NCBI RefSeq assembly: GCF_040938485.1
Contig: NW_027272134.1
Coordinates: 1,178,001 to 1,242,000 of the forward strand
Direction of reading: 5' to 3'
Source of the DNA: Diadema antillarum
Lineage: Eukaryota
Length of the DNA: 64,000 nt
Positions 3,509 through 59,201 of the stretch are shown here, in pieces (position 1 is the first letter of the stretch; every line of letters starts with the position of its first letter). Both the position numbers and the translations under genes were made by a program. The notes below the pieces were generated by a model. It was not told where the DNA came from. It was given only the letters and a program-made list of their open reading frames with translations, and ran no database searches.

Positions 3509-4693
3509 TCAGCATGATGAGGTGTGCACACCAGAGACACTTGTTTCTGTGTTTGACTGTTTAGATCTCGCCTCATTGTCATGTTCAGTTAGCGCTGCTG
3601 CACTCAAAAATCGCCTCAGAAATCTCGAAGGTTCTGGGATCCGATCTAAGTCACAGTGCACCATGCACCCAAAGACGAGCCGAAAGGTGGGATGTTTGAG
3701 GGCATAGATGATTGGATTCAGGCAGCTGTCAAAGACGAGAACCAGCGCAAGGTATGAGGAAACATGCAGAATTAAGCCAGGGGATTTCACAAAAGTCGTA
3801 GCAAAGAGGAGTGCCGTGTATGGCAGGACGCAGAGGAAAAAACCACAGATGACGTAGAGGAGGTTCTTGGTAATTGTGATGTCTAGCCGTGTGGGCTTGT
3901 GCACCTTTTTCTGACCTGGTTCTTTTTTGGCTGTCTCCCCTCCTTCTACCTTAGCTTTTTCCAGCGTTTCCCTCTTCTCTCTGGGAGTGGACGGAGCTTT
4001 GTTTGTGGTTGTCATGGTGTTGCGTACATGCTGCCTCACATGCCTGTATATGAAAAAGTAGCTCGTAACAATGAGGATGAATGATATCATGGCCAGAATG
4101 CCGGCCAGAATCTGGTAGATGTAAGCAGCAGGGTGCATAAAGTCCCATGCACATAGTCGGGAGTTGATGTCATAGCCAAGTTTTCCCTGTCCAGCAGCCT
4201 GTGGCACAACGAGCGTTACTATGGGATACGCCCATGAGAGGATGACCATGGCCGCCACTTTCGGAGCGGTATATATGCGCCTGTAATCCTTCCGAGATCT
4301 TGTGATCAGTATGTAACGGTTGATGGCGATCAACGCCAGGGTCAAGACGCTGCAGCTCACTGCTGTCACAACACTGGAACCGGCAATGGCGCAAATGACG
4401 GGATGCAGTGGCCATCCGCGCTCACCCAGCAAGCCCACTGCTTGAAAAGGCTGGACGATGGAGACCAGAAGGTCCGTCACACTCAGGCTGACGATGAAAA
4501 CGTTCGTGGCTGTCTGGAGCTTTCGGGATAGGAGAACTGCGGCCATCACAAAGAGATTCCCAACTATACCCACAACTCCGATGATGCAATAAAGGGTAGC
4601 CAAAACGGCCCTCTCTGCGTAGTTTGAGATTCCCTGTGATTCCAACCCACTGTTCCATGGGGCTGGAGAGGTACTGAATGACTGAAACTCCAT
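3509..4693 (-). CDS. Class A (rhodopsin-like) GPCR, NRY-type (Moody/Tre1/GPR84/melatonin-receptor-like), 394 aa, single coding exon
   Basis: Seven hydrophobic helices; GN in TM1, LSVTD in TM2, INRY at the end of TM3, LCAWD in ECL2, NPIIY in TM7. The ORF-track start at 4771 is TTG; the first ATG is at 4693, downstream of a strong splice acceptor (ttctttttctttctcag ending at 4784), implying a spliced 5' UTR. Confidence 0.9.
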   Translation of the reverse strand: MEFQSFSTSPAPWNSGLESQGISNYAERAVLATLYCIIGVVGIVGNLFVMAAVLLSRKLQTATNVFIVSLSVTDLLVSIVQPFQAVGLLGERGWPLHPVICAIAGSSVVTAVSCSVLTLALIAINRYILITRSRKDYRRIYTAPKVAAMVILSWAYPIVTLVVPQAAGQGKLGYDINSRLCAWDFMHPAAYIYQILAGILAMISFILIVTSYFFIYRHVRQHVRNTMTTTNKAPSTPREKRETLEKAKVEGGETAKKEPGQKKVHKPTRLDITITKNLLYVICGFFLCVLPYTALLFATTFVKSPGLILHVSSYLALVLVFDSCLNPIIYALKHPTFRLVFGCMVHCDLDRIPEPSRFLRRFLSAAALTEHDNEARSKQSNTETSVSGVHTSSC

Positions 4694-7600
4694 TTTCTTT
4701 GAATAGTAGTCCCTGCAGTCATGTAATCCAGTGCTCCCTACAACAGCAGGATTCACAGTTGAAAATTCCAATGTGATATGAGCCTGAGAAAGAAAAAGAA
4801 TAATGGTATTGATTTAAATGTGCACGTGCATCTGATGTCAGGTAATGTTGGTTAATATGCCCATGATACATGCTACGCTATGCAGTAACTTGTGCAAGAT
4901 TCAACATGACAGTGAATGCCAATTCCGGGTTCACAGATAAGGAGAGATACCATGGAATGATAGACATTTGTCATTCATTGTTTTTGTGGTTAAAAAAAAA
5001 AAAAAACAACGACACCCAGATCCAAGCCCAGCTGTGCATTTCCAGTAATCCATTTTCAGTGTACTTCTTCAAGAACACATCAAGGCACCATTCAGTCATT
5101 TTATTTTCCCTAATCTCAGCTGCTCCCCTTCAACCATGTCACATTGTGCTATTTCTGTTTGCAGGTAAGGTCACATGCACATCCTCAGCCCTGGGACCGT
5201 ACATTGGAGTTTCCTGTGGTAAATGACATCAATCTTAATTTCAAGCACGAATGTCTGTCACTTTCAAGATTCATCTTCGTAGAAAAAAGGGGGATCATGC
5301 AATTCAACAATGATGGCATACACAATAGAAGTTTTTATTTTTTTTAAAAAGTGTTAATGCATAAGTTTTCAGCATCTTTCTGACGCTTGAAGTACAGCAT
5401 TAAGATTTGTTAGTTGAATTTTCTGAATTAGAAAGATATATCCAAACATTGGAATGAAGAAGCCATATGTGATGTGATGCAGAAAAGAAATTCCAATCAA
5501 AATTGCCCTACCTGTGTTTGAGCAGTATGATATGTTAAAATGGAAGTGATGAAAGTAGGGATTTTAAAATTGATATTGGCAATGAAGATGAATCATTGGG
5601 AATCAGTTTAAGTATTTGTGGTTGTTTATCACCAGCTCATTAATAGTCATACATAGTCATTGTGATTAATGTATGGAGGCGGGCGGTTAATGTTACTGGA
5701 AGACTATGATGCCCCTTTTCTTCCCTCCTCCACTTTCAATCTTTTTTTCCCCCTTTTCCCCTTCATGAGTGCGGTTAGGGAGAGAGGAAGTTTTTGCTTA
5801 GAACTTGGCTACTGTTCAGGTGGGGGAAACAGGAAGTAAGCTTGATGGATCCAATCTATTCTTATTTAAGTGATCACATTTAGGATTTGAGTTCAAACTC
5901 ACAGGCATCTGCCTCCTCCACAGCTGACTCCTTCAGCCTTGAAAGTAAGTGAAGGGGGGGGGGGGGGGGAGGGAAGAACCCCCCCCCCAACACACACACA
6001 CAAAACAAACCCAGGGATAGTCTGAGTTGAGATAACAGGCATGTGAGAATGCTACTGAATGTAAGACTACTTCCAACTTAGAGTTGCACCGAAAGTTTTC
6101 GGCATATGAATCGCCTGTAGGCAGGGAGCAGGTCTAGCATTTGCACTTTTGTTGCTAACTGATTATGATAATAATAGTGAATATTTGTAGAGTGCCTTTT
6201 CCACTGGATACAAAGCGCTATGAGATGTCATCTCTGGTTGCCATTCTTTACTTGGAAGTGGCAAGGTTTTGATTCTTATCACATGTTTTGAGTGTACATG
6301 GTGATTTCTACTTCTACTTTAACATTTATCACATTTGACACATGTGCAGGACAAAAACAAATGCTATTCTTGCAGATACAAAGATCATTGTGTGAACACC
6401 GTATGGCCAGCTTAGCCATATTGAATAAGTGCATATGAAAAATTTTTCATTGGACTAGAATTGATTATAATCAGAAACACCTGTCTCTATGATTTTTGCA
6501 TTATTTCATATTAGGATCAGAGAATTTGTTTGAAATTAATTAAAACAAGTTGCCTGAAAATATAGAGTGAGCCCAGGACAACTTTAACAGTGGATTAATA
6601 CCGGTACATTCTTTTGAATGAGAAAAAAAAAAAGGAAGAAAAAGAAAGCAAATGCTTTTGTGCAAGGAATGTGTACTTCAGTTATTTCTTTTTTTGTATG
6701 TGTATATTGAGATAGTGGTTATGATGTAGTTTTCAATGTCAGTAATAGAGTTTCTGTGTGTATGCCCTTAAAATGTCTATTCTGTTAAGCTGTCAAGATT
6801 TGAATGGGTCTGCTCTTTAGAAGCTGTCCCAGAGGTTTCAGACAGGTCTAAAAAAGAAAAACGGGAAAACGTGATTGTAGAAAAATCAGGAACTGGAAAC
6901 AACTACTCCTAGAAAACCTTCTGTGTCCACCCCCTTAAACTAACAATACTCAAGCAGAATTTGCAGAAACTCTCAAACTCAGCAGAATTTGGCAAAGCTT
7001 GAATGCTTTGATGTTAGAAATCCTGTAATATTTGGTTGCGTGACATACAGCTGTGGTAATTTCAAGACTTTTTTTCCCTCTTGAAACTATACAATATTAA
7101 AGGTCACCACTCTGATGGCCAAAAATGACTATTCTAATCGATTGCAACAAAAATGGCTATGATAACCCATTAGCAACCTCCCAGAGCACATTGTCTATAT
7201 TCACAAATGCTGTGAGCTTTTTGCCCAAGGGTTAATACAGTGGCAAAAAAAAAAAAGAAAAAAGGAAAAATGCTTTATGATATCACAATGTTTGCAAGTA
7301 ATCATTGGCCCATTGTAGCAGGATATCATACACTGTATCTGTCATGCAGCAATCACACACTGCACCAACTTACAAAATCAAGTCTCACCTCCCTGTATTG
7401 CTATTCTCAAAATAGATCAAATCAATTAAAACTCTATTAAAGGGTTTTCAAAAATATGCTACAGCCTCTAAAATGGGATACATGTCACTCTCCATCCCCA
7501 AAGTGTTACATAGGAGGATTACTCATCAATATCCGCGCACGTCCTGAGAAGCCAATTAATCATAATGTTTGCTCTAAGAGTTTGCCTAAGCAGTATTAAA

Positions 7601-43902: not shown

Positions 43903-44640
43903 CTACTCTGAGCTGTAAGGATTCAAAGTTTTTGGCTACAATTTTAGGGTTATCTGACGGGGAAAGTGATGGACGCATTCTCCCAAAAACCAACTTTCTT
44001 CCATTTACTCATGGCTTTTGGAGTAGTCTATGATATAATAATGGTAATGATTTTGTTAATGAAAGTGATAATATGATGAGGATGATGTTGATAGTGATTA
44101 AAATAATGCTAAAGCTAATTATATAGTTGATTATGATGATTCCATGATTGATGTAGACATTTTGTAGTAAAGATGACTCCAGGACTTGATGAAACAGAAT
44201 GATGTTGGCTCTACTTCAAAGTTACGGACTTTTAGCAGCACTCAGCGAGGTTTAAAATATTTTTCCATTATGCAGCATTTCACAGTTTGTAGATTATATT
44301 TAGTATATACTGTGTAAGCAGTTTTGCTAAATTTTTTCCTTTTTTTCTCTCCAAAAGTGAGGGATGGGTTAAAAATCTTGGGAGGTTGGAGAGTATATGT
44401 GTGGAATGCTAAAATTGAAATCATAGAAAGCAATGTGCAGTCATCATGGTATCCGGAGAATTATTTGATTTGATCAGATTAACCCCCCCCCCCCCCCTTA
44501 ATATTTTCTGTTTGAATGTAGTGAAGAGATGTAGGGTCATGATGACGACTAAAATCTGATGGATGTAGCCTATATATTTCTACCAGCAGCTGTCTGATCC
44601 CCCCACCCCCATGTAAGTTTAGGTCTGGGTTATGTTTGAT

Positions 44641-44672
44641 CAAGGAGCTTCAAACACATGGAGATACAACGC
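44641..44672 (+). repeat. Left terminal inverted repeat CAAGGAGCTTCAAACACATGGAGATACAACGC
   Basis: Exact reverse complement of 58818-58849. Confidence 0.97.
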
Positions 44673-44785
44673 TCACTTTCCTTTAGAAGTAAGCTGTGAT
44701 GCCGCCGTCGTAAAACAGTGGGTGGTTGACCCTTATCTAATCTACTGGAATGTCACTCTGACCGCAATTCGAAAGCCCCGCGGAA

Positions 44786-44873
44786 AAATACGTCATCGGA
44801 AGTCAACGCTCTCGCAATGCATTGTGGACAAATACGTCATCGGAAGTCAACGTTCTCGCAATGCATTGTGGAC
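44786..44873 (+). promoter_or_regulatory. Subterminal 44-bp direct repeat x2 upstream of the PHD gene, containing ACGTCA (CRE half-site) and CGGAAGT (ETS-type) motifs
   Basis: AAATACGTCATCGGAAGTCAACG(C/T)TCTCGCAATGCATTGTGGAC twice with 1 mismatch, in a CpG-rich segment about 140 bp upstream of the ATG at 45010. The regulatory role is inferred. Confidence 0.6.
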
Positions 44874-45009
44874 GCGAAGCGATATTCGGTGATGTTTAGC
44901 CATACAGCTCTATGGCGATACTGTACTGTAGCGTGTATTAGCTAGCTAACTCATCGCGCTCGTTAATTGCTTGACAAGCTTCCGTAATTCCGTGGCGGAC
45001 AAAACAAAA

Positions 45010-45262
45010 ATGACTTCGTCTTCACTGACACTGGATGATAGAGACGTGATATGTATTTGTTCCATCCCCAAAACATCTAATCTCATATCCTGTTCTAATG
45101 TTTCGTGTACAATCGGTATTTACCACTCCGAATGTGTTGGACTGCAGCTGCACGGGCACGGGAGTGCTGGAAAATCGGATTGGTTTTGCGAGTTATGCGA
45201 TGCCGATGAGACAGACGACGTATTGGAAGGGGATGTTGAACTTAATTCGGAAACTAAAAAAG
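45010..45262 (+). CDS. Exon 1 of accessory gene (PHD finger and acidic stretch)
   Basis: CIC-x10-C-x4-C-x5-H-x2-C-x15-WFCELC; ATG in aaaATG context; donor AAG|GTACCG. Confidence 0.85.
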
Positions 45263-47633
45263 GTACCGTTGAATTCATTGTTCTTACTGAGTGATATCAT
45301 TACAAAAAAAAAAAAAAAAAATTGATAGGTACAGTCAGTGTCAGCATATGCAGCTGCAGGAGGTGGTGGTCTGGATGATCGCTGAGCAAGTTTTTTTTTG
45401 AACACTGAAAGTTGGATCATTTGAGCTGTAGACTTTACAATACGAAAACCAAGGAGCTTCAAACACACTGTTTGAAGCTCCTTGAAATCCCTGTCTGCCA
45501 CAGATAATATTTTCTGATAATTGATAGTACTTCAGAGAGGTATTAAATAGTAGCCAGTTAATACTTGATTTATAATAGACCTACCACGTCACTAATATTA
45601 ATGATAATCATTTCCATTTGAAAAAAAAATAATAATAATGTGTCTCCAAAAGAAATAGTTACACTTACAATAATACAAATTAATGGTTACAGTAATCAAA
45701 TAACAGTCGTGATGCAATGCTGATTAAAAATAAAAATGATAAGTAATTTACCAATGATAAAAATAATTTAAGCGATAGTCATAAGGATACTGCAGTTACT
45801 GCTGCTGCTAACAAGAAATATGATGGGGGGGGGGGGTTGGTGTCGGGCTTGTATTCAGGGAAAATTTGATATCCGAGTATGTCATTGCAGAATCATTGCT
45901 ACAGTACATGGCATGAACAAGTCTTAAAATGAAAATCCCATAATTTTTATTGTCAATAATGATCTACCTACAGCGTACTAGTAGTGTATTTGACTACTAG
46001 TAATAGTATGTCGAAGTGGCTTTGCACCCTCAGCCTGATTTTGTTTAGGAGCTGACGGAGGGCTCTTGAGAAAAATTAATAAAATGACAAAAATTCTCTT
46101 TCCTTTTCTCTATAGTTATACTTGCTGCTTTGTGCTTGTATGTTTTATTTGCATGTATCAAAATATTAATAGGTCCAATAGGAATCAAGCTGATTACCTC
46201 TTCTTTAATCCTCATCTTCAGATGACCATATGGAACAATCATATGAACAGCATGAACCAGGATCTTCGTCTGATCAACAACCGAAACTGCCTAAGCAACA
46301 ACAGAAGGTGATTCCATGTAAGTACAAGTGTATACCCAAAATTGGGTCCAATTCTGGTCATTTAAGGAAGAGCAATTTGATGAATTTTAAAATCAAAAGG
46401 CATACATGTAGTTCTTAAATGTAACATTGAAAAAAAAATTGAGGAAAAAATAGAAATGACTGGTACTTCACAAATTTAGTTGGTGAATTTAAAAGTACAT
46501 GTATATGAGGTTTCATTCTTTTTTTCCCCCATTTCAATCTAATTTCTCTTTCATCAACAACGTAAACTATATATGTACATTTCTTAATGAAGAAAATTTT
46601 TAAAGCCTGTTGTCCTTTTTCTTTTCTAGTGCACGGCTCCAAGGTCGTTAAGAGTGTCATGGAAGCAGGGTACGACATCTATAAGGAAGCACTTGAAAGG
46701 GCACAAAAGGATGATCATTTAAAAAACTACCCTACAGGCCGAGAAGTCATTAGAGTTTGTGAACTTTTGTTAAAGTCCCCGACCGATGAGAGCAGGAAAT
46801 CAGCCCTTGGACTTGTTGAGAGCGTACATACTTGTGCATGTGCTGGTGATGCATTTCCTGTTGGACCAGCAGCCAACGAGAAAATTTGCAGTGCCTTTCA
46901 CCGCCTTCGAACGCAGACATCTCTACAACATACCTGGCAGACACTTCTTCTTCAGAGCAACATAACATCCTCACCCCAAACTTCACATCTTTCACTTCAG
47001 TATATACTGCGCCAACTTCTTCACATCATCACACACCGGAGACTCATTCAGCCCGATGAAATCCAGACTGATGACTCAGCAAATCTCACAGAGCATGATG
47101 AAAATGTCTTGAGATATGTGGCTGGCTACATCCCTTTCGCATTAAGTAAAAGATACACCAAGACAAACTCCAAATTCTACAGGACTTTACAATCTTGGAG
47201 GGGTTCAGATGAAGACATTGTTGCAGATACATTTCTTGAGTACACATGTACTTGGACGAATCTTGTTAATAGAGGGGGGCTTTTCCGTGTTAAGGACAAT
47301 GTTTACATGCTGTTCCGGGCCATGGAAATTCAAACAAAAAGAACACTTAATATGAATCTTGCTCAATCTCCTGACCTTGGAGGCTTGTTGACCAAAGCTT
47401 TACTGCAAAGTGAACATGTTCTACATTGTTGGACCTCCCTCATTGAAGATTTGACTGAAAGTGAAGCACAAACATTGCTGCTTACTGTTGTAAGATACTG
47501 GGTAAAGATCAGGGTTAATGCCTTTGTACGAGTGTTTCTAAATCTACGCAAAGAGGAACAAGCAAAGAAAAAAAGGAGTAAGAAAATAGCACGCAAAGGA
47601 GAAAAGAGTTTAAGGAAAACTCTTCAGAAGTAA
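45010..47633 (+). CDS. Transposon accessory gene: PHD finger + acidic linker + P-transposase C-terminal-like domain, 450 aa; exons 45010-45262, 46222-46317, 46630-47633
   Basis: Canonical GT-AG introns with matching phases (1 and 1); 253+96+1004=1353 nt with no internal stop. C4HC3 PHD in exon 1; YVAGY, RGGL and KIRV motifs in exon 3. Confidence 0.85.
45450..45484. repeat. 35-bp TIR-to-TIR hairpin (putative excision footprint)
   Basis: CAAGGAGCTTCAAACA-CAC-TGTTTGAAGCTCCTTG = first 16 nt of the TIR and its reverse complement; flanks are not duplicated. Confidence 0.85.
46222..46317 (+). CDS. Exon 2 of accessory gene (Q/E/S-rich linker)
   Basis: Acceptor ctcatcttcag, donor T|GTAAGT; phase-compatible with exons 1 and 3. 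Confidence 0.75.
46630..47633 (+). CDS. Exon 3 of accessory gene (P-transposase C-terminal-like domain)
   Basis: Acceptor ccttttcttttctag; long ORF with ENVLRYVAGY, WTNLVNRGGL, YWVKIRV and a basic tail. Confidence 0.88.
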
Positions 47634-48986
47634 TGAGCGAATCATTTGTGACAATCAGCAACATTGTCCTTAATTTCTACCGGTAGTATAATCTGGGATC
47701 ATTGATGTCAAAAAAACAAAAAATTTTTCAGTTATACAGTTTGAAGTACAACTTTGGTCAACATTCATTCCTAAAATTAAGAACAGATGGAGAGGAGAGC
47801 AATTGTCCATGTATAACAACTGATGAAGCTAAATGCTGTAATGCTGTGATTATTCATGGAATCTTTATTAATGGTGCCTGTCAGTATTGTACGTTGTAAC
47901 ATTGTACATCCATCCTTCAGCAAGCTTTGTATTTGGCAATACACATATTAACAGAAAAGAAGTTTGTTAATGTATACATTAAAAACAGCTAGCACAATGA
48001 AATAGATCCCTAAGTGTTCATTGATTAACCATTCTGGTCACTTCATCTACAGGTCCATTCTTTGCTAGAATACGAGTTTCATAAATTGCTATGTTGGGCA
48101 AGCTGCTGCATTATATCGCTTTGAATTGAGTTAAGTGCCTAACCAACGGAGAAAAATGAAGGGTCGTTTGTACCCATGTGCACATGAGATATCCCCGATC
48201 TGGCTTGGTCCGTACGCTGATACCACCCAGCAGTTACCTGGCAACAGGGTGAATGCACCTGCAATAATGTTGTATTTGCATAGTGTGTTATTGTACAGTG
48301 AACGAGGAGTCTCTCTATTTCTCTCTCTCCTGTTCTTTCTCACCATCTTTCATAATCGCTGCCCCCTTCTTCTTTGTTTTTCTTTCTTAGCATCACCTGC
48401 GTTCCTGTCCGTGTATGTTTTGTTGTGTAACTGTTTTTGTTGTGTAAAATTAGGTTGTCTTGTTGTAAAAACTCTTAATTTATTTATCTTTGTATGAGGC
48501 CCCAATATCAAGTTCGGCTTACTGGGGATCCTCCTGTATGGTACCTTGACTTTTTTGTTTGTTATCATTATGTGTTCGTTCTTTATCACTATGATTTGAT
48601 TACCTGTCATGTGCAAAATCAGCCATAAATTATTATAAATCATGTGTTTACATCTGAAAGTGATCAGAGTTGATTATGTTGTACCATGCAGAAACAATAA
48701 AATGAAATGAAATGAAATGAAATAGTGTTATAGCTTACAATGTTATATAAATTATCTACAAACGAAACAGAATATGACCACTAAAATAATGATGATAATG
48801 ATGATAACAGCTCTGATAAAGATGCATCAATTTTAGATGTAACAAAGATATATTTGACAGCTTGTCCAGTCACAATGCAGGTCTCAAGTAACAGCTTTGC
48901 AGTTGTATTGCTAGACCTTGCCAGTATGTACTAAATGTTGACAAGATACATTTTCATTTTGCAAGTGAAAATTGCCATAGATAATA

Positions 48987-49168
48987 CAGTGCACTCCCGT
49001 TATAACGAACACGGTTATAATATTCCGGTCATAACGAAGTAAAAATTTGGGCTGCAATGTCATCCACTGCATGTATTTCTATTGTTTATTTTCGGTTATA
49101 ATGAAATTCCGATAATAACGAAAGAAAACTGCCGGTCCCGAGGACTTCGTTATAACGGGAGTCCACTG
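48987..49168. mobile_element. 182-bp Tc1/mariner(pogo)-type MITE nested in the P-like element
   Basis: 23-bp TIR CAGTG(C/G)ACTCCCGTTATAACGAA with TA on both sides. Confidence 0.8.
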
Positions 49169-50096
49169 TACTTAAAAAAAAAAATACTTGAAAAAAAAAA
49201 TTCTTAAACCTCCTTCAGACACGATTTGCAATTATCACACAGGTAGCTAAATAGACAGTGACATGAATGTGTAAGCTGATATAATTCGAAGACAAAGTAA
49301 ATGCATCTTTATCAGCAAATTTTGCACCATTCCTGTTCATCTGGAAAAAATAAATAAAATGTGCACATGGTGATGTCAGGACTGTACAGTGTTTATATTG
49401 ATCATGATTTTTTTTTTTTTTTGGTATGAAAGTTACATTGACAGAGCAAGAAGCAACATTCAAGTTGTTATTTATGATATGAAATCAATTATGAAATATA
49501 CAAATGCATAGCATATCACGACCTTTATTTGCTCTCGACAAGGAGCCTGAATAATGGAGAGAAAGAGAGAGAGAGAGAGAAAGAAAGGAAGAGGAGGGAA
49601 TGAGGGCTAGAGAAAAAGTATCAAAATGACAGGACATGAAATTAAAAGAGAAAAATTAGCATTTTCTTTCCCAACAAAAAGTAACAAGTAATCAGGGTCG
49701 GCGAAAAAACATAGCGTGTTTTGACACATGTTTTAAAACATGTCTTAAAACACCTTTTTTTTTTAGCAAAAAAAAAAAAAAAAATGTTTCGAAACACCCC
49801 ATTGACACATCTACTAAACATATGTTTGTCTATGTGAATTGTAATTTTCATTTTTTCAAATGCTTTTCTCCTGACCAGTGCATGAACATAAATCCAAAGA
49901 AAGTAGGAAATCTCTATCTTCTCCTGTATATCTCCCCTCTTTCTTTCTTTCTCTCTCCCTGTACCTCTCTCTCTCTTCCTCTCTCTCTTCTGCCTTTCTA
50001 GCTCTATCACTGACTCTCTTTTGCTCTTTCTCTTATATTCTCTATCTCTCCCCCTCCCACCTCTTTAACATTAGTTCTTCTCACATAAAACCATAC

Positions 50097-50119
50097 CAAG
50101 GAGATTCAGAAGCTCCTTG
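50097..50119. repeat. Excision footprint with perfect 7-bp TSD ACCATAC
   Basis: ACCATAC-[CAAGGAGATTCA GAAGCTCCTTG]-ACCATAC. Confidence 0.85.
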
Positions 50120-51013
50120 ACCATACTAATATTCATATGAAATGTGATACAGTGTATGATTATTTTACAACTCTAGATCCCTGTAACACCTCCTCAATCA
50201 TGATGAAAAGCAGCACAAGTCAATTTTTTTTGGTGATAAATTTGTTACTTTAATAGCATGCAACGCGATATTTCATGACCGTATACCCAGATATGCAATT
50301 CGAGAGTCATGCAACATTTAACAAGTGCATATCAAGCCCCAAATTTAAAACAAACAAAACAAACCCAAAAAAAAAAAAGAGCTTTCACCTACAAATCCAA
50401 TGCAATTTCTGTTGTTAGTCAGAATTCATAAAGAATTATTTTCTTGGAGTAAAAATAAAAATTATAGATTTGTTGTTGATCGAAAAAGCGTTACTGACGA
50501 TTACCTTTAAAACAACACTAATAAAAGTTGAAAACAAATAAATACAGCTGTATACAGTATGAGAAAGTTATTTAAAAAATAAAATACTTGAGAGCAAGTG
50601 GTGGCCCCGCCCCGCCCATGTTTACTTGCATTCAGACTGCAATGTATTGTGTACAGTTTTGTTAGGTTTCTTGCGTGGAGAACTTACACAAATCTGTACA
50701 TGAGGGACCAAGGAGCTTAGCTTGGTGATCATACACACGAGTCAATTTTCATCCATTTCATCTAAGTCAATATAGTAAAATATGAAGTGAGAACATTCAG
50801 GATAGGGATTTCAACATCTTTGAATTCTGTGAAGGGGCATAGATCCAGTGATATTGGCCTCATAAATGAACTGTAAGTACATGAACATTGCACATTCAGT
50901 GCAGCAGTTGTAGCTGTTTATTCAGCACTAACAGCGGTGCAATGGGTCTCTAGTTAGCCGGAGCTAGCGGGGCAGGGTGCTAGGTATAGGACTAAGGAGC
51001 AATAAGGTGACAG

Positions 51014-51039
51014 TAAGGACCTTCAAACAAAGCTCCTTG
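51014..51039. repeat. Excision footprint with near-perfect 7-bp TSD
   Basis: GTGACAG-[TAAGGACCTTCAAACA AAGCTCCTTG]-GTTACAG. Confidence 0.75.
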
Positions 51040-52088
51040 GTTACAGTAGCCTCCTACCTGAAGCTGCACAGTTTCGGTCTCGAAGCTGAGGTACATGTAT
51101 GTTTGACTGTTGATCATTATCATCTAATAAACTATTATGATTTGAAACTTCGCATGTTCAATGTAGGTTTATCATAAAGCAAATGACTACAGTGATAGTT
51201 CAATTCTGTTTCCATGAGGAGCGTGCAAATAGAAGTCTATAGCATACTCGACGTGATGACAGGAATGGACATTCTGAAGACTGAAAATGTGGTCTAATAA
51301 CCTCAACCTATGTGCAAATCAGCAAAATTTCACATCAGAGATATGACCAAGATCTGAAGGGGGGCAATTTAACAATTTAAAAGCTGATTTCAAAAAAGCC
51401 TAGTTAAAGTAGGGTTAATCATCCTTTCAAAAGAAATGCATCAGAAAGGTCAATAACCGAGCTCAATTTTTTTGCCCATTGTATTGAATTGCACTTTTGT
51501 TCCGATTTCACACTGACTTTCAAATAAAATGGAAAATTTAAAGAACTCTTAGAATATACAAAAGAGATGCACGCTTCCATTTACAATTGACTAATTTCAC
51601 TCGTGAAATACAGTAAACGTTGCACAAGGTGACCTTCAAATCAAGTCCAATAGGTCTGCATGTAAGTCAATGCAATAGACATTATGTACGATGTGTCATT
51701 TCCTCGTACAGAAAAAGTCAAATCTTCTCTTTAAATTGAATAGATTTCTGTGATCCCAAGAAATGGATCGAGGCGTGGAGTTACTCGTATAATATCATTT
51801 GTTGAAAAATAATTACTGCTGCATACTCCATAGAAACATCAGTTGAAGTATTATCAGTTTTTTTCTCCAACATTTGTTTAGTCAAAGGAATAAGACTTCA
51901 TTAAGCAAACCAACCAAAAACAGGTTAGAGGAGTTCAAATCTTAGACTTAACATGCTTATTGCTGATTATTGTGCATGCCATGTGCTCGTGTAAATCTGG
52001 CTTCTTATTCAAGAAATAAATCAAAACGTTATTTCACATGTCGTGAAAACAAATGAGAATCACAGGCAAATGTCAAGATTGCAAACAT

Positions 52089-52375
52089 TCATCGCTTTCT
52101 CTTTCTACTCTGCAAAGGAGTAGAATCCACAGCAGTTTTTCGTTTTTGTGACTTCACATTAGCTTTTGCTGAGACTGCAATGCTTGAACCTGCTACATGC
52201 AGTGGCAGAATGTTTGAGCCAAACTGATGAACATCAGGGTTGTCAAACCGTCCTCCAACTCCTCGCTGACGACTGAAGTACTCTTCCAAAGGATCTTGGC
52301 TGAATTTTTCTGAAAGAACAAACTCCACACCATCCTCCAAGAGAAGCTCCTTGGCAAGTTGAACAAATGAGCGCA
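52089..52375 (-). CDS. Transposase exon 6 (catalytic Glu, SQDPLE; basic C-terminal tail RKRKR)
   Basis: Acceptor ttaataccacag; phase 1 restores VRSFVQLAKELL. Confidence 0.9.
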
Positions 52376-55300
52376 CTGTGGTATTAACAAGACACACACA
52401 CAAAAAAAAAATGTGAAAACACTCTGAAAGAAATGTTTATGGCAAAATAAAAGGGAAGAAAGAGCATATGATCATGGATGTTGTATTGACTAAGAGTAAT
52501 AAACCTGTAAAAAAAAAAAAAAAAAAACACAAAGTACAAAATATCTTGATAAGTTCATGCAATGAGCTTCTTTTTTAAGTTCCTTGGTTCATGCATGAAA
52601 GATAATACAAATCAATATACAAACCATGAAAAATCTCCAGAATTTAAATAACCACGCGAATATTAAGTGCAGGTAGAGAAGAAATGGGAATAAAACAAAA
52701 CATGTGAGTTCTTTATTGCACCTAACATTAGAAAAATGCAATGTCTCTTATCCATACTTTTTCCTTTTCTTTTCATTTTTTTATGAAATAAGGAATAAAC
52801 AAGAAATAGGAAATCATGTTTAGAACGTACATGTATTATAGTACATTTGCATGCATGTGTGTGTGTGTGTGTGTGTGTGTGCGTGCGTGTGTGTGTTTGC
52901 ATTCAAATTTGTCTGTTCTTGAAGATAATGTTCTTATTTTGTTCTAAATTGAACATGGAATTTGTATCAATACTAGTAGTTAAAAGTAGTTCTGAGAATG
53001 TCTGCGCTAATGTGGCAATGTGCATGTGCTATGTCTATGGTGCAATATAGGTAGCCATCTCTGTCAACCTACCCTGAGACAAACACTCTCCCAGGCCCAT
53101 CCCACCTCCATTGAACAAAACCTACAGCCAGTCGGGCACGCACAAACAAGCTCCGCCCACTTGGCCTGTCACTAAAATATTAAAGCAGCGATTGGTTGAC
53201 CAAGGAGTTCTGGCTTGACATGGATAAAGTATGGATGTGCTGTGTGTATGGATAAAGTATATGGATCGATGTGCTGTGTGTATACATGTATACATGTGTA
53301 TGTATTCGACATGCGTGCAGAGCGGTGCATGCTTACCTGCAGCGGGCCAGGGACGGGGTTCTTCGACATGCCGATTTTTTTGTTCTCTAAATGTAATGAG
53401 AATGCCAGACAAATCTTCTTCGGCTCAAGTGATGTAAACTACGTGTATTATGTACAAAAGGGACTGAATGTTTTACTTCGACACAGCCGAAATTCGACTC
53501 TCGTACTTCGGCTTATCCAAATATTTCTTAGAGAAAACACATAGGGAAAAATCGGGACTTCTTATTTTGCTTCGAGTTAAGTGATTTTCGACTCACTCGA
53601 CGTCGACTTATCCGAGGTTTACTGTACGTTATAATCACCTGTTAATCTCAGGCCATCAAGAGTTGCTTTACTGAGACACAGCTTCTGGCGATCAGCTGCC
53701 TTAAGACCGGGGACAAGCATGCCTTCAGACTCCCACTCATCCAGTAAGCCAAGGAAGTCTTCCTCTAGCCACTAAAAGGAAATAAATTAGAAGGAAATCA
53801 GATTATTAGGAATTAACACAGTCTGAAGCTCCTTGATAATACTCATATTAAAAAAAAAAATAATAATTTATGCAAAAGCCTTTCCCCCTTATTTAAAAAA
53901 GGGGGGGGGGGTGCAGCAGAAATTTTTCTTGTAGCTTAATGTTGGCCTAATGGAACACTGAGGTCTAGTTTCATCTGCTGAGGTCAATTAAAATGTGTAC
54001 TTGCACATGTATACCAGACTCCCTTTTGTCTTGAAGGGTTAACAACAAATGTGTCTAAATCTCCCAATTTTAACTTCTTCATTGTTCATCTACAAGTACA
54101 TCACAACATACCACAGAGCTTAAAACTGTTTTAAGCTCCTTGAACATACCAACAATCTCCAGTCATCCACAGATTTGTAAGGGGCAAGAGCTGGATTTCG
54201 GGATTTGATGTGCTGGGAGATGTTCGACACATTCATGCAGTCAAAGAACTGGTTGAAATATTCTATGAATGTGATGGTGCTGGATGTCTCCAATGGTTTA
54301 CTGCTTTGCTGTTGTTGCATCTTCAGAGCACTAGCCATAGATGTGCTGAGAACCTGTAAATAGAAAAAAAAGTTCAGATACATTCATGAACATTCCACTA
54401 TTTCTACAGACCCTGTGTGAAACAATTGGTGTGGGGTGTATGTGTGCAGGTGTATGTGTTTTGATATCGATTATCTAAAGATAAGAGTCTTACATGTACT
54501 ATTAATGGTAGATTATTTGAACCAAGGAGCTTAATTGTAGATTATCTGAACCAAGGAGCTTAAAACAGACGACTACTGTTTGAACATAAATGCATGTTCT
54601 ATAATTGAATACTTTGGAAAAATAAAAAAGCACTCAAAATAAAGCTATGATTTCACATAAATAGGACAAAAACACAGAAATCAATGAAATTAGATTACAT
54701 GCACAATTTAAGTTATTATAAGTACACATATTTTTAAATGCTTCAAGAGAAAACTAATCCACATTAACAAGGAGCTTGTTTGAAACTCCTTGACATTTCT
54801 GAATTTTGCTATTAACCCATAGAGGTACATGGCTTTGCACGGGTATAAATCAATCAGCTTTTTTACTTGAAATCCAATTTTGATGAGATTTTCAGCATTA
54901 TGCTTTTTTTATTTTTTTATTTTTTTATTCAAATCAACTTTTTGCTGGGGTGGACTTCCCCTTTAAGAGAAACTGCAAAAGTGTCTCCTCTGTGGGTTAA
55001 TGGATGTAGTGACAACCTTGCTTTGCTGCTATATGATGTTTACAGCAATTACATAATATTCTTACCTGTGCAGCAAGGGAAACTCGCATGCGTGATGAAG
55101 GAGTCAGGTTAAGATGTTCTGCGGTGATTTTGTTGAGCATTCGCAGTCCTTGTGCTGTACCATCTGGATTGATGTGCCCAGTGTCCCAAGCGTTGACATC
55201 AAGGATATGTCTCCAGGAAATTGGAGCACCTCTAAGCTACAGAGAATAACAAGTAATATTTAGAATTACCATCAAATGATCTTACACAAGAAACATAATG

Positions 55301-58300
55301 CTACACTAACAGAAATTGTCAAAGGAAATGATTTAGCACTATAATTAAGGACTAATAAGAGGCTACTTGGTGAATTGAAGTCTGAAACATTTTTTTTTTA
55401 TAAAAAACAAACAAACATATATATATGAAAAAAAAACAAACATATATATATGATATACAAGAATTCTTAAATCTACATGAATATCAAAAGTAAGAAATGT
55501 AAGACCAAGAAGTACTTTAGAGACATTACCTACGTGTACGTGATAATCTGAATAACTTTTCTACTGACACAGCATCATTACTATTTTGTACTTAGAGGAT
55601 GAATCAATTCGATAATTCCAAAACTATTTACCATCATATTTCTGGTGTTGTTATGGCTGCCAGAGTTTTCGAAGTTGTTTCTTGTTGTTTTGATCAGGTG
55701 AGGGACATCAGAGATAAAATATATCTTGTGGTCAGGGTTGAAGGGGTTTATTGTGAAGTGCTCTGAACTGCACAATTTGTAGAATTTCCTGTTTGTGGTG
55801 GCCCCATCTGACACAAATGCACGAACATGGAATCCTGCAAAATGCAGTCGCTCCACCCCCTCCCAGATAATGTGGTACAACTGATCGGCTGTCATGGCAT
55901 CACATGGAAAAAAACCAACTGGAGTGTGAAGATTATGAAAGATCCCTCGGATCATGATGGTAAGTGCATGTGTTGCAATGTTCTGCGTAGTGTTGTCTTC
56001 TGCCTCTTTTCGATACTTCAAAAGTTCATTGTTAATGTCTCCAAGGTCTGTAAATCCGACCAGTTTACCTCTTGACGTGTAGACAAGGCCTGATTTCACC
56101 TTCATTTCATCAAAGACGACCGATACATTTTTCTGATGGGGTGGCAGAGACTCAATGTTTATGTCCTTCGCAATCTTGGAAAGGAAGTCTGAAGAGTATC
56201 CAGGGTTGATGTCAAAGCAGTGTGTGTAGTTGAAGAGTGTGTTTTTATGGGGAAGGTGGAGATACCCGGAAGACCGAAGAAGGTCATATGCAGCAGGGCT
56301 TTTGGAGTGAATTGCAATGCAGAGGCGGAGAATTGAAGGATGCCAACGCATCTGGCGGGGTGGCTTTGTGAAAAACTTCTGTTGTTCCTCCCACAGAAGC
56401 TTTGCAGGTGACCCTTCTGGGAAGTCGGCATTGTGGGCTTGAAAAATATCCTTGAATGACTTGCTCACTTTCTTATCGATGATTTCCCCTTCCTTTCGGA
56501 TCATCTTGTGCAAGGACTTGCGTAGCCGCACTAAGTTCTCCCCCATGGCCTTCCTTTCCTTACTCATTTTTTCCAAGCGATTACGCATCTCCGTTTTTGA
56601 CAAGTGAGCATGTGGCTTGAAGCTTGACGTACTCGCTGTTTCTTTCTCCTTCTTTAACCTTTTGCGAAGAATGCCAAGATCCGTCCTGTAGATGGTACAG
56701 GTACCGCACCGTCCAACATCACCTTTGAGGATGGGGCAACTGTTGTGTCTCAATGACACATTCAGAGAGTCATATTTACTCGGATGATGGTATACAGGAC
56801 GGTTCATAACATCTTCTGGGCTAATATCACCAAAGTCTTCATTGCCTGGGCAGACATGTGACTTCATGATTGCTTCTAAAAACTCTAGAATCTGCGATGG
56901 AGACAAATTGGGCGGAAAATCTTTGAGAATGTCAATTCCCGGATCTATTACCTTGCCATAGTGGCGAACCCTCCAACTTCCGTCACAATTAATGATGCAG
57001 CATTTCTCCGACATGCCTTCATCATCCAACTCGACAATGATCACCTTCCCCTCTCTCTGATTGAACACCATCTTTCCTTGGAGCACATCCTGCGCATTCA
57101 TCACTGCATCTAGAATGCCACCATCTTCCTCTTCATGCGAAACACAATATTTGCAGTCCGGTGCATGAGGCTCAAAATCAGGAACAACAATGCTGATACT
57201 TGCAGTTTGCCTCTTTCGTTGCTTCTCACGCCATCTCGATAACTTCTTCGAGCAAAGCCCACAAACCGAAGGAGGATGAATATCATCAATGTCGAGAGAA
57301 ACATCGATGTCAAGAGCCCTTTTGATAACAGCAGACCATGTTGACTTTGCTTGGTGTCGCTTATTTGGCAATGTGATACCATCGCTACCACACAATCTAC
57401 AGATGTCCTGAAGTTTTTCCTTGTGTCTGTCCTTGTCGTCTAAAAAAACAATAATAACAATAACAACAACGATAATAATAACAGTAATAATAATTTTAAA
57501 AAAATAATTCTATAATAATTCGGTGATACTTAATCACATCAGTTTTCTAAAGCTCTATGAAGCTGAATATAATGTACACAACAAAATCACATATATTTGT
57601 TTTAAAAAAATCTTTTATGTGTCATGTTGTTTAATAGTATTTTATAAATTCACATGATAAAGTAAACCTAATATAATAAGAAAAATAACTGAATGAAATG
57701 AACATATAAAATTTCACATTTACACTTTGGTCACTATTCAATTATTTTTCAATAATCTAAAGCAAAACAAGCAACAAAATACTGGTTCAAGTGAAACATG
57801 ATGTAGCTCACAGGATATTGACTGAAATTATGCATGGGATCAGCGCACGGGATAGCCATTAAATTTACAAAGTTAGAGCGTCGATTCGGGTAAACATGCA
57901 GTCATTTGTACATCCACAAGAAGATTAAGATCGAGAACCTTGTCGGACTACAGTACGCCTGCTTGTACTTTGTTTTTAATGTTCTGAATGGAAGCTATGA
58001 ACATGTAAATTCCAGACCATGCGCCACATAGGCAGGCTGGAGGATTCAACTACCGATGTCATCTCAGTGACACTTTTGTACAGTCCCATATATAAGACTT
58101 TGAGTGATAAAAAAAGCTACTTTTAAATAGACGCTACGTAAACATCACACCAAAATGACTCACAAATATCACTTCTTCAACGATTATTTTCAATTGCAAC
58201 AACATAAAACATGAAAAAAATGTATGACCTACGGATAATTTTCCATAACTCGAGGAATACGAAACACAAGAGTGGAAAAAAAAGCTGAAAATCTCGGCCA

Positions 58301-58502
58301 ACAAGCATTCGAAACTCGGCTTTCCTGAAGTTGGCCGCTGCTGGCCGCAGTGCAGATGAAAGCGTTTGTAAAGACGAGACTTCGATCTTCAAATTCATAT
58401 ATTGCGCATCATGTGGATATTTGCGGAATTTTACTTATCATAATCATAACTTAGCTAATTAGATATTCATAAAAACACATGATAACATCATAACTCACCC
58501 AT
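52089..58502 (-). CDS. P-superfamily (THAP9-like core) DDE transposase with RAG1-N-terminal-like zinc domain, 868 aa; exons 58502-58499, 57439-55632, 55236-55066, 54353-54150, 53771-53639, 52375-52089
   Basis: All junctions GT-AG and phase-consistent (1,0,0,0,1); 2607 nt with no internal stop. P-type motifs RWHP..SPAAY..LR, VFDEMK, SDGA, SDVPHLIK, HLNL..MRVSLAAQVLS, FDCMN, FSQDPLEEYF..GG..DNP. Confidence 0.9.
52560..52586. repeat. Excision footprint with perfect 7-bp TSD GTTCATG
   Basis: GTTCATG-[CAATGAGCTTC TTTTTT AAGTTCCTTG]-GTTCATG. Confidence 0.8.
53639..53771 (-). CDS. Transposase exon 5
   Basis: Acceptor atttccttttag, donor G|GTGATT; WLEEDFLGLLDEWE...LSKATLDGLRLT. Confidence 0.85.
54112..54142. 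repeat. Excision footprint whose perfect TSD (AACATAC) is the splice donor of transposase exon 4
   Basis: AACATAC-[CACAGAGCTTAAAAC T GTTTTAAGCTCCTTG]-AACATAC; the reverse complement GTATGTT is the intron start at 54149. Confidence 0.85.
54150..54353 (-). CDS. Transposase exon 4
   Basis: Acceptor ttttctatttacag, donor G|GTATGT; VLS...FIEYFNQFFDCMN. Confidence 0.88.
54768..54792. repeat. Excision footprint with partly decayed TSD
   Basis: ACATTAA-[CAAGGAGCT TGTTTGAAACTCCTTG]-ACATTTC. Confidence 0.7.
55066..55236 (-). CDS. Transposase exon 3 (insertion/GTP-binding domain region)
   Basis: Acceptor ttattctctgtag, donor CAG|GTAAGA; ISWRHI...KITAEHLNLTPSSRMRVSLAAQ. Confidence 0.88.
55632..57439 (-). 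CDS. Transposase exon 2 (RAG1-like zinc domain, second Cys/His cluster, coiled coil, HTH-like region, first two catalytic Asp)
   Basis: Acceptor ttgtttttttag, donor ATG|GTAAAT; 1808-nt open frame. Confidence 0.92.
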
Positions 58503-58572
58503 TTTTTGTCCGATTTTCGTGATTTTTTTTGGAGAACGAAGAGAAAAGCCAGCAGAGTCGATTGAACATAAA

Positions 58573-58584
58573 TGCGCATGCGCA
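58573..58584. promoter_or_regulatory. Perfect NRF1-type palindrome TGCGCATGCGCA upstream of the transposase ATG
   Basis: Consensus match about 70 bp upstream of the ATG at 58502 in a CpG-rich subterminal region; function inferred. Confidence 0.55.
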
Positions 58585-58817
58585 TGGGATACCCCTACAC
58601 ACTGCGCAAGCATCGACATGCTACAGCTCCCCAGCCCACATCATGCTAACACGGTCGAGTGAGCAAACACTACAGCACCGAGCGGCATCATACCTCTCGG
58701 ATAAAGGAAGGGGAAATGGGACCCAGGGGACCAAGGGGACCGTGTTATCAGTGAAATATCTTTACTTTCTCCTCGCGCACTAATCCGCTGGCATGCTGTG
58801 CATTTTTTCCTGCTCCG

Positions 58818-58849
58818 GCGTTGTATCTCCATGTGTTTGAAGCTCCTTG
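58818..58849 (-). repeat. Right terminal inverted repeat (32 bp)
   Basis: GCGTTGTATCTCCATGTGTTTGAAGCTCCTTG followed by TSD GTTTGAT. Confidence 0.97.
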
Positions 58850-59201
58850 GTTTGATGTGATTGATGGAGAGTGTGCTGGTAATCTGTCAAGGAGGGAACA
58901 CAAATCCTCACAGATGGGATCAGATCCAGTTTGACTTGATTGATGTGCACATCCAGGGGTTTGGGAGATTTTGTTCTTATTGGCCATATCTTCCATCACC
59001 CTGTCAGAGTTAGTATGCCTCCCTCCACCTATCCAGTCTCAGATCAGTTTGCAGAGAGGGGTCATTGAACACTTTCAAGCTCCATTAGTCATCACTTCTG
59101 CACCTTATTTTTTTTTTCCAGCTCATCTCTGAGAAGCGAAGGTATGAATACAGATGCCCACTATTTTCGTTGAATACCTGTGATGTTGGGATGATCTTTA
59201 A

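Follow-up and report, generated by a model that had tools for sequence, protein, structure and literature searches.

The window analyzed here, 64,000 nucleotides of Diadema antillarum DNA (contig NW_027272134.1), contains two convergent genes that combine features of P transposases with features of RAG1 and RAG2, which raises the question of what kind of element the pair forms and where its second protein comes from. The first-pass annotation of this DNA had read the locus as a P-core element that independently reached a RAG-like design of recombinase plus chromatin reader. Our analysis points elsewhere: the locus is likely a P-superfamily cut-and-paste transposon, 14.2 kb long, autonomous and active in recent times, from an old conserved lineage in which transposase function is divided between the two genes.

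Boundaries, copies and gene order

The element occupies positions 44641-58849 of the window (14.2 kb), with both spliced genes placed between terminal inverted repeats (TIRs). The left 32-bp TIR (44641-44672, plus strand; CAAGGAGCTTCAAACACATGGAGATACAACGC) is complementary to the right one (58818-58849, minus strand) at 32 of 32 positions, and an identical 7-bp target-site duplication (TSD), GTTTGAT, flanks the element on the left (44634-44640) and on the right (58850-58856); an 8-bp TSD does not fit. A second genomic copy (L001), found at another locus with unrelated flanks, is 99.8% identical to the window element, with 21 substitutions across about 12.5 kb; this comparison covers the left end and those 12.5 kb, the right end lying beyond the locus examined. 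The match between the copies begins exactly at 44641, which independently confirms the left boundary. Two copies were seen in the Diadema assembly, and the one in the window sits inside an intron of a SNF2-family helicase gene. Close to the left end, a 44-bp direct repeat (44782-44873, plus strand; 2.1 copies, 95% match by TRF) has its sole occurrence in the window and is a putative transposase-binding site. The genes run tail-to-tail, with stop codons at 47633 (partner) and 52089 (transposase). The perfect TIRs, the exact TSD and the two convergent spliced genes free of stops that had been described from the letters alone were thus all recovered with verified exon models, and the near-identical second copy at another locus bears out the view that the element is recently active.

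P-type core and RAG1-type zinc domain of the transposase

The transposase gene lies on the minus strand, and the translation of its six GT-AG coding exons equals the NCBI protein P0001 (868 aa) exactly. Exon 1 (58502-58499) consists of the ATG plus one base, is spliced after ATGG (ATGG/GTGAGT donor) and is required to obtain P0001 exactly. Exon 2 (57439-55632) encodes a RAG1-type N-terminal zinc domain (NZD; aa 7-100), a second Cys cluster, an HTH and the N-terminal part of an RNase H fold with D445 and D546. Exons 3 (55236-55066) and 5 (53771-53639) are exact exon models; exon 4 (54353-54150) covers part of a GTP-binding insertion domain (Pfam TNP-like_GBD), and exon 6 (52375-52089) encodes the C-terminal part of RNase H (Pfam TNP-like_RNaseH_C) with the catalytic E804, a basic tail and the stop codon. 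Pfam matches to TNP-like_RNaseH_N (1e-25), TNP-like_GBD (1e-17, residues 582-708) and TNP-like_RNaseH_C were accompanied by a match of the core to PDB 6p5a (E 4e-23), in which the triad D445/D546/E804, invariant in the transposase family, aligned to Drosophila D230/D303/E531. Judged by its sequence, the core is of the P type, and not of the Transib type, as the first-pass annotation had held, and the element belongs to the P superfamily. The GTP-binding insertion domain sits within the RNase H fold, between beta5 and alpha4, and use of GTP by the enzyme can be predicted.

The two ends of the protein depart from this pattern. No THAP domain was matched by Pfam in the transposase; instead, the N-terminus matched RAG1_imp_bd (3e-8, above the gathering score) and zf-AD (5e-4). 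A THAP domain is shown by the THAP-type relative P0198. A profile built from 12 family N-termini matched the solved RAG1 NZD (21wb_A) with an E-value of 1e-13 over chain residues 15-131, and RAG1 residues 101-217 with 3e-10, all His/Cys ligands being aligned. H7, C15, C18, C61, C64, C97 and C100 vary little or not at all in the transposase family, and the ligand pattern H, CxxC, CxxC, H, CxxC covers both zinc modules (ZFa and ZFb). The RAG1 match is limited to residues 25-102 of the transposase (RAG1 positions 139-215), and nothing in the protein matches the RAG1 core. In Foldseek, an AF2 model of the domain (pLDDT 85) retrieved ZAD domains as its best matches (prob 0.94, TMt 0.58) and gave no match to the solved NZD structure; the ZAD result is in line with a recent preprint that describes a similarity between ZFa and ZAD (10.64898/2026.01.24.700457). 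The profile alignments establish true homology between this N-terminus and the zinc domain of RAG1, with the full NZD present and standing in the place of THAP, which substantiates the RAG1-like zinc domain noticed at first reading. The Chapa domain has been stated to be absent from transposons other than Chapaev (PMC4411706), and Chapaev has been described as the only other lineage retaining NZD/Chapa outside RAG1/RAG1L (10.64898/2026.01.24.700457). A P-type family with an NZD contradicts both reports on this Chapaev-only distribution.

At the other end, the C-terminal domain (CTD) is absent from P0001, since just about 40 aa follow the C-terminal part of RNase H, and it is likewise absent from all full-length relatives, which end about 40-60 aa past RNaseH_C. 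In contrast to these NZD-bearing transposases, P0198 has a 220-aa C-terminal tail.

The partner protein and the missing C-terminal domain

The partner gene, on the plus strand, encodes 450 aa without stops when its PHD exon is included. Exon 1 (45010-45262) carries an ING-like PHD finger and the start of an acidic linker and is spliced after AAG (AAG/GTACCG donor); exon 2 (46222-46317, GTAAGT donor) continues the linker, its end at 46317 being verified by exact translation; and exon 3 (46630-47633) encodes the conserved all-alpha core, with the P-transposase CTD-like motifs LRYVAGYIPF, NRGGLF.V.D and W.KIR. The NCBI model P0013 (363 aa; 46230-46317 plus 46630-47633), whose ATG lies at 46230, leaves the PHD exon out. 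The donor at 45262/3 and the acceptor at 46221/2 are phase-consistent and join this exon to the annotated part, and the same N-terminal PHD, alignable to exon 45010-45262, is found in Lytechinus, Acanthaster and S. purpuratus homologues, including P0016, P0017 and the S. purpuratus partner. The PHD finger and acidic linker claimed earlier are present as a Cys4-His-Cys3 pattern and a linker in exon 1, but the Pfam PHD score of the Diadema finger (E 0.0085, 16.5 bits) stays under the 24-bit cut-off; some partner homologues give PHD matches down to 2e-6. At the two positions that, by eye, would form the ING-type aromatic cage, Acanthaster P0040 has Tyr/Trp and Diadema Ile/Ile. The finger varies by lineage, with PHD confined to the echinoderm members, a C2HC-like module in Hydractinia and C2H2 in Branchiostoma.

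The conserved core of about 330 aa (AF2 pLDDT 87.6) has homologues in echinoderms, amphioxus and Hydractinia, and the partner family comprises at least 4841 representative clusters (50% identity) at E<=1e-3. Its sole structurally meaningful Foldseek match was 6p5a_B, a CTD chain (prob 0.98, TMt 0.67, E 0.73). The partner HMM also matched 6p5a_B (E 0.075, two collinear motifs), and hhalign matched the partner to the C-terminal tail of P0198 (E 0.004, four collinear motifs). In addition, Tnp_P_element_C was the commonest Pfam match among partner homologues (8 of 74, weak and below threshold), and the amphioxus partner has a weak precomputed THAP9_C match. These lines of evidence are weak individually but concordant, and it is their agreement that makes the case for the partner core corresponding to the P transposase CTD. 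Because the core is CTD-like and the transposase ORF lacks a CTD, the pair has the appearance of a P transposase split in two. Against this, the partner has an additional N-terminal helical half (about residues 30-170), for which no counterpart was recognised.

Related elements extend this arrangement to other taxa. The convergent gene pair was found in Diadema (three families), S. purpuratus, Apostichopus, Branchiostoma and six Hydractinia copies. Eight full elements combine 7-bp TSDs with 32-bp TIRs whose tips are shared, namely the window element, five Hydractinia copies, Apostichopus L004 and Diadema L013, and the CAWGGAG...GGAGA motif of the window element's TIRs is common to related elements in four other taxa. 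The Hydractinia copies are 99.8-99.9% identical to each other, and S. purpuratus and Apostichopus have single annotated loci. No matching TSD pair was seen at the Branchiostoma copy, whose transposase is uncalled in the annotation, and no TIRs turned up at S. purpuratus L005 or Diadema L012. Across the related elements examined, which range from cnidarian to cephalochordate, the two genes always occur together, and the partner is therefore not a captured host gene, an origin that the first-pass annotation had named as fatal to its own reading. The searchable literature, a scope that excludes Repbase and the original N-RAG-TP paper, yielded no published description of a two-gene P-type family.

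Other explanations of the partner have to be set against these data. It could be an independently acquired RAG2-like chromatin-reader cofactor, not derived from a transposase, so that the pair converged on the RAG1/RAG2 design. This would suit the PHD pattern and acidic linker, the stronger PHD matches of some homologues, the convergent gene order and the RAG1-type NZD on the transposase. However, the PHD is not family-wide, the conserved part of the partner is all-alpha and CTD-like, with neither a kelch propeller in the model nor kelch Pfam matches, and a CTD is missing from the transposase itself. Together with a TSD that is not 5 bp and an end that is not heptamer-like, these results argue against the RAG-like convergence originally proposed, and we consider it unlikely. 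We are about equally doubtful that the partner regulates or represses transposition, for instance as a CTD-like decoy akin in role to the 66-kDa and KP repressors of the P element, and is not an obligatory catalytic subunit. P elements do encode truncated repressor proteins (PMC7776569), a separate gene on the opposite strand allows independent expression, and CTD-like homology suits a competitor as well as a subunit; yet there is no CTD on the transposase to compete with, the partner gene stays intact in each young copy and from phylum to phylum, as expected of a required function, and a repressor is normally not indispensable for the propagation of every lineage. Finally, the sighting of just two copies in the Diadema assembly and the single annotated loci in S. 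purpuratus and Apostichopus might suggest a domesticated or immobile gene pair, or chance neighbours. This is very improbable given the perfect TIRs and TSD, the 99.8% identical second copy in unrelated flanks, the at least six near-identical Hydractinia copies with their own TSDs and the position of the element inside a helicase gene intron.

Possible excision traces and relation to known transposons

For the split P transposase that we favour, the first gene (868 aa) would supply, in order, NZD/Chapa, HTH and a P-type RNase H fold interrupted by the GTP-binding insertion domain, and the second (about 450 aa) a variable N-terminal zinc module, an acidic linker and the all-alpha CTD-like core. 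Both proteins would assemble on the 32-bp TIRs (conserved CAWGGAG...GGAGA), presumably in physical contact, make P-like staggered cuts at the ends, offset by perhaps about 17 nt, and integrate through a 7-bp staggered target cut; the partner would presumably be required for transposition, and its zinc module may contribute chromatin or DNA targeting. P excision leaves footprints with at most 17 nt of each end. In this regard, the window contains several footprint-like remnants of TIR tips that keep at most 17 nt per tip, several with perfect 7-bp direct-repeat flanks: 50097-50119 (ACCATAC on both sides, 7/7), 52560-52586 (GTTCATG, 7/7), 54128-54159 (GTATGTT, 7/7) and 54768-54792 (flanks matching at 5/7). 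Remnants like that at 50097-50119 appeared in none of 200 shuffles of the window. The longest, an internal tip-to-tip palindrome at 45450-45484 (17 + 1 + 17 nt), also occurs in the second copy and lacks matching 7-bp flanks. The remnants indirectly suggest P-like staggered cleavage, and the tip-to-tip palindromes could instead be tiny non-autonomous elements or binding sites.

The element shares with Drosophila P and with human and zebrafish THAP9, as also with Galileo and 1360, the RNase H core, the GTP-binding insertion and the aligned DDE triad. Also in common are an HTH that precedes the core, TIRs that begin with CA(T/A)G and are about 31-32 bp long, and TSDs of 7-8 bp, the TSD of Galileo being 7 bp (PMC4168063). 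Unlike P and THAP9, it has an NZD in place of THAP, its presumed CTD is encoded not on the transposase polypeptide but by the convergent second gene, which has a zinc module too, and its genes have conserved introns. With the Transib-derived ProtoRAG and RAG1-RAG2 it shares two convergent genes between TIRs and an NZD at the recombinase N-terminus, and its echinoderm members share with RAG2 a PHD finger and acidic stretch in the partner; but the core is P-type with the RAG1 match confined to the NZD, the partner is all-alpha where RAG2 is a kelch propeller, the TSD is 7 and not 5 bp, and the ends read CAAGGAG. Chapaev (CMC) has a similar N-terminal Chapa/NZD without the vertebrate H2 helix and with the type I ligand pattern, that is, one N-terminal His plus His-Cys-Cys (10.64898/2026.01.24.700457), although it belongs to another transposase superfamily. 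The Diadema element may belong to the same family as N-RAG-TP of Aplysia californica (Panchin and Moroz 2008). A second element-encoded protein, needed or presumed needed beside a DDE transposase, is also known from PIF/Harbinger (a Myb-like protein) and from CACTA (TnpA/TnpD), but there it is an unrelated DNA-binding factor, whereas the Diadema partner is apparently a detached transposase domain.

An NZD on a P core, at the usual position of the sequence-specific THAP, offers a testable hypothesis for NZD function, recognition of transposon ends or subterminal sites, for which natural copies of young age and the conserved TIRs could serve as substrates. A more speculative extension, to which we give little credence, is that NZD/Chapa is a portable end-recognition module moved between P, Chapaev/CMC and Transib/RAG, that elements like those of the P-NZD lineage (possibly N-RAG-TP itself) were the source of the N-terminal region of RAG1, and that the pairing of a recombinase with a histone-reading subunit, as in the layout with a PHD partner, had more than one origin or passed between elements; if true, that combination existed in marine-invertebrate transposons before V(D)J recombination. 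A naturally split transposase with its CTD in trans, fused to interchangeable zinc modules, would also give a route to CTD function in P and THAP9 and an existing two-component system whose targeting might lie on a detachable subunit. Furthermore, the uncharacterised partner family now becomes interpretable as ORF2 products of transposons, and two gene models are corrected, by the PHD exon in the Diadema annotation and by the uncalled transposase in Branchiostoma.

P-type transposase with a RAG1-type zinc domain

The contig analyzed here (JBFRCO010001246.1, assembly GCA_040938485.1) comes from the long-spined sea urchin Diadema antillarum, and the element (44641-58849) lies in an intron of a SNF2-family helicase gene. 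Its terminal inverted repeats (TIRs; 44641-44672 and 58818-58849) are complementary at 32 of 32 positions and GTTTGAT flanks it on both sides, which confirms the perfect TIRs and the exact 7-bp target-site duplication (TSD) described in the first-pass annotation; an 8-bp reading of the TSD was rejected. The minus-strand transposase gene consists of six GT-AG exons, the first supplying only ATG plus G, and its translation is exactly the NCBI protein P0001 (868 aa). Pfam matched the TNP-like RNaseH_N (1e-25), GTP-binding insertion (GBD, 1e-17) and RNaseH_C domains in this protein and detected no THAP domain. Comparison with the Drosophila P transposase structure 6p5a gave an E-value of 4e-23, with D445, D546 and E804 aligned to D230, D303 and E531, the Drosophila catalytic residues. 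These matches support the earlier assignment of the catalytic core to the P type and not to Transib/RAG1.

The N-terminus is of a different kind. The Pfam domain RAG1_imp_bd was found at residues 7-100 above its gathering score, and the alignment of this N-terminal zinc domain (NZD, or Chapa) with that of RAG1 matched all the zinc ligands, so the RAG1-like zinc domain noticed from the sequence alone stands. The ligand columns (H7, C15, C18, C61, C64, H93, C97 and C100) are invariant or nearly so in the family alignment. The alignment with RAG1 contains one large gap, where a recent preprint places a vertebrate-specific H2 helix (10.64898/2026.01.24.700457). When an AF2 model of the domain (pLDDT 85) was searched with Foldseek, ZAD domains were matched and the solved RAG1 NZD was not among the matches; a similarity between the ZFa module and ZAD is described in the same preprint. 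Additionally, a second invariant cluster, R232, C236, C246 and C249 (T.RH.SC...RC..C.IYR), was observed at residues ~232-249 (window ~56750-56697, minus strand), between the NZD and the HTH and with no Pfam match; it is probably a further zinc-binding element.

Partner gene and the split-transposase reading

The convergent partner gene was modelled by NCBI as a 363-aa protein (P0013) on the plus strand at 46230-47633. A canonical donor (45262/3) and acceptor (46221/2) join to it an in-phase upstream exon (45010-45262), giving a 450-aa product with no stops. This exon, absent from the public annotation, encodes a PHD-like finger (Cys4-His-Cys3) which aligns with the PHD at the N-terminus of its homologues from Lytechinus, Acanthaster and S. 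purpuratus, and for this reason we consider the longer model of the first-pass annotation better than P0013. The two genes are thus convergent, spliced, phase-consistent and stop-free, as had been proposed, and their stop codons face each other across 4.4 kb.

A PHD-like finger is present as claimed, but as a module the PHD is not conserved outside echinoderms: the Hydractinia partner starts with an acidic stretch followed by a C2HC-like finger, and that of Branchiostoma with a C2H2 finger. Furthermore, a Tyr and a Trp of the Acanthaster PHD are both Ile in the Diadema copy; if these positions are the ING-type cage residues, methyl-lysine reading by this PHD would be doubtful.

The last exon of the partner encodes a ~330-aa core that is conserved across the range from Hydractinia to amphioxus and contains the motifs LRYVAGYIPF, NRGGLF.V.D and W.KIR. 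When 1.84 billion cluster representatives were searched with a partner profile, 4841 relatives were retrieved at E<=1e-3; the best 150 are without exception stand-alone proteins, 170-535 aa long. No Pfam family scored above its threshold; the commonest weak match was Tnp_P_element_C (8 of 74 partner sequences), and the amphioxus partner has a weak precomputed match to THAP9_C. The AF2 model of the partner is confident (pLDDT 87.6) and all helical, and its only Foldseek match in the PDB with a meaningful superposition was 6p5a_B, the separately modelled C-terminal domain (CTD) of the P transposase (probability 0.98, target TM 0.67, rmsd 5.1), all others having TM values of 0.1-0.2. At the sequence level, the A1 profile of the partner matched only designed helical repeats in the PDB, the deeper 74-sequence profile A2 matched 6p5a_B with an E-value of 0.075 and two collinear motifs, and hhalign aligned the partner with the C-terminal tail of P0198, a THAP-type relative, with an E-value of 0.004 and four collinear motifs. 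The P transposase CTD is all-alpha, has a flexible link with the RNase H domain, and makes contacts with target as well as transposon DNA (PMC7776569).

P0001 ends ~40 residues past RNaseH_C, as do all its full-length relatives, whereas P0198 continues for 220 residues more. The tests relating the partner to the CTD are individually weak, independent and concordant, and the CTD-like core supplies precisely the part that the truncated transposase lacks; on these grounds we think it likely that transposase and partner together represent a split P transposase. An origin of the partner as a captured host gene was also considered and rejected. The first-pass annotation had instead proposed a RAG-like two-component design. 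The element shares with RAG/Transib the NZD and the gene orientation and differs in every other feature compared, and the core of its partner is CTD-like, so this part of the proposal was not upheld as stated. With the P superfamily it shares core, GBD, TIR and TSD, although it lacks the canonical THAP domain and fused CTD.

According to Kapitonov and Koonin, the Chapa domain is not encoded by other known transposons (PMC4411706), and the NZD preprint names Chapaev as the only other lineage retaining it, with no mention of P elements (10.64898/2026.01.24.700457). Neither statement holds for the NZD-bearing P family described here. No description of a two-gene or NZD-bearing P-type element was found in the literature searched. 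N-RAG-TP of Aplysia, reportedly from Panchin and Moroz in 2008, may be the one precedent; the papers citing it do not state its transposase class.

Conservation and mobility of the gene pair

The convergent pair was found in the element, in a second Diadema copy, in two further Diadema families (L012 and L013), in S. purpuratus (L005) and in all six Hydractinia copies. It is also present in Apostichopus japonicus (L004), with the partner apparently frameshifted, and in Branchiostoma belcheri (L014), where homologous transposase exons including the NZD exist though unannotated. Co-occurrence of both genes thus extends to other copies and species, and transposase exon boundaries recur among these loci at residues ~605, 662, 729 and 773. 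As to gene models, the Branchiostoma transposase (16281-12452, minus strand) is wholly unannotated and P0186, the 1292-aa model of the L012 transposase, includes a fused upstream region that contains a B-box.

The TIR tips are similar across phyla (CAAGGAGCTTCAAACACATGGAGA, CATGGAGCTACAAACAGAAGGAGA, CAAGGAGGTTTAAAAAGAAGGAGA, CATGGAGGTAAAAAAGAGAAGGAGA and CATGGACCTAGCAAAAATGGACA). A fixed CAAGG-tip search missed CATGG-type ends, and a general inverted-repeat search, used instead, recovered TIRs at L004, L013 and L014 and found none at L005 and L012. TSDs of 7 bp surround eight full elements, the amphioxus copy alone lacking one; Galileo, of the P superfamily, also makes 7-bp TSDs (PMC4168063). 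Across the insertions and footprints compared, 12 in number and drawn from the window, L004, L006, L008-L011 and L013, the duplication has T at position 2 in 11 and G at position 1 in seven, which in so small a sample hints at a target preference.

The second Diadema copy (L001, contig JBFRCO010000984.1) begins its homology precisely at the first TIR base; an allelic haplotig was rejected as its origin because the flanks are unrelated. It differs from the window copy by 21 substitutions over about 12.5 kb, the right end of L001 being left out, with seven in transposase exons and none in partner exons, and by two larger changes in introns or spacer, a deletion of 798 bp and an insertion of 517 bp (L001 16594-17531 against window 52827-53624 and 54046). 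The deletion reaches to within 15 bp of the exon-5 donor; the insertion lies in the intron separating transposase exons 4 and 5. As L001 has no transposase gene call, this copy may be defective. A related 7.3-kb element of Hydractinia symbiolongicarpus is represented by at least six copies with 99.8-99.9% identity; the five full-length ones each have perfect 32-bp TIRs and a 7-bp TSD of their own. The similarity among copies in both species agrees with the recent activity suggested earlier. One Hydractinia copy, L007 (9371), keeps both genes intact although 195 bp at its start, the left TIR among them, are missing.

Tip-to-tip remnants and other features of the window

In the window the TIR tip motif was found nine times, where 0.23 occurrences would be expected, and always inside the element. 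The internal motifs form short tip-to-tip palindromes keeping 9-17 nt per end, at 45450-45484 (17+1+17), 50097-50119, 51014-51039, 52560-52586, 54128-54159 and 54768-54792; three have perfect 7-bp direct-repeat flanks (ACCATAC, GTTCATG and GTATGTT), and no such remnant arose in 200 shuffles. A further remnant, at 54552-54590, likewise keeps no more than 17 nt per end. Comparable remnants (L013 9056-9077 and 25181-25203) exist for the L013 family and, in L013 but outside any element, for the family of the window element. They resemble footprints that the excision of nested insertions would leave. P excision, with its 17-nt staggered cut, leaves at most 17 nt per end, and the ceiling of 17 nt indirectly fits a cut of this kind; the remnants could instead be minimal non-autonomous elements.

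Located 140 bp in from the left TIR, a 44-bp direct repeat (44782-44873; 2.1 copies with a 95% match) has no counterpart at the right end and is a candidate subterminal binding site. Upstream, 740 bp from the element, there is a run of 254 N (43649-43902), and an Rfam scan of the window gave no matches. Lastly, two intronless rhodopsin-family GPCR ORFs were found at 3509-4771 (minus strand) and 37918-38997 (plus strand; Pfam 7tm_1, 2e-46 and 2e-33, respectively), at least the latter inside the annotated span of the helicase gene hosting the transposon, which was followed from window ~36230 onward.
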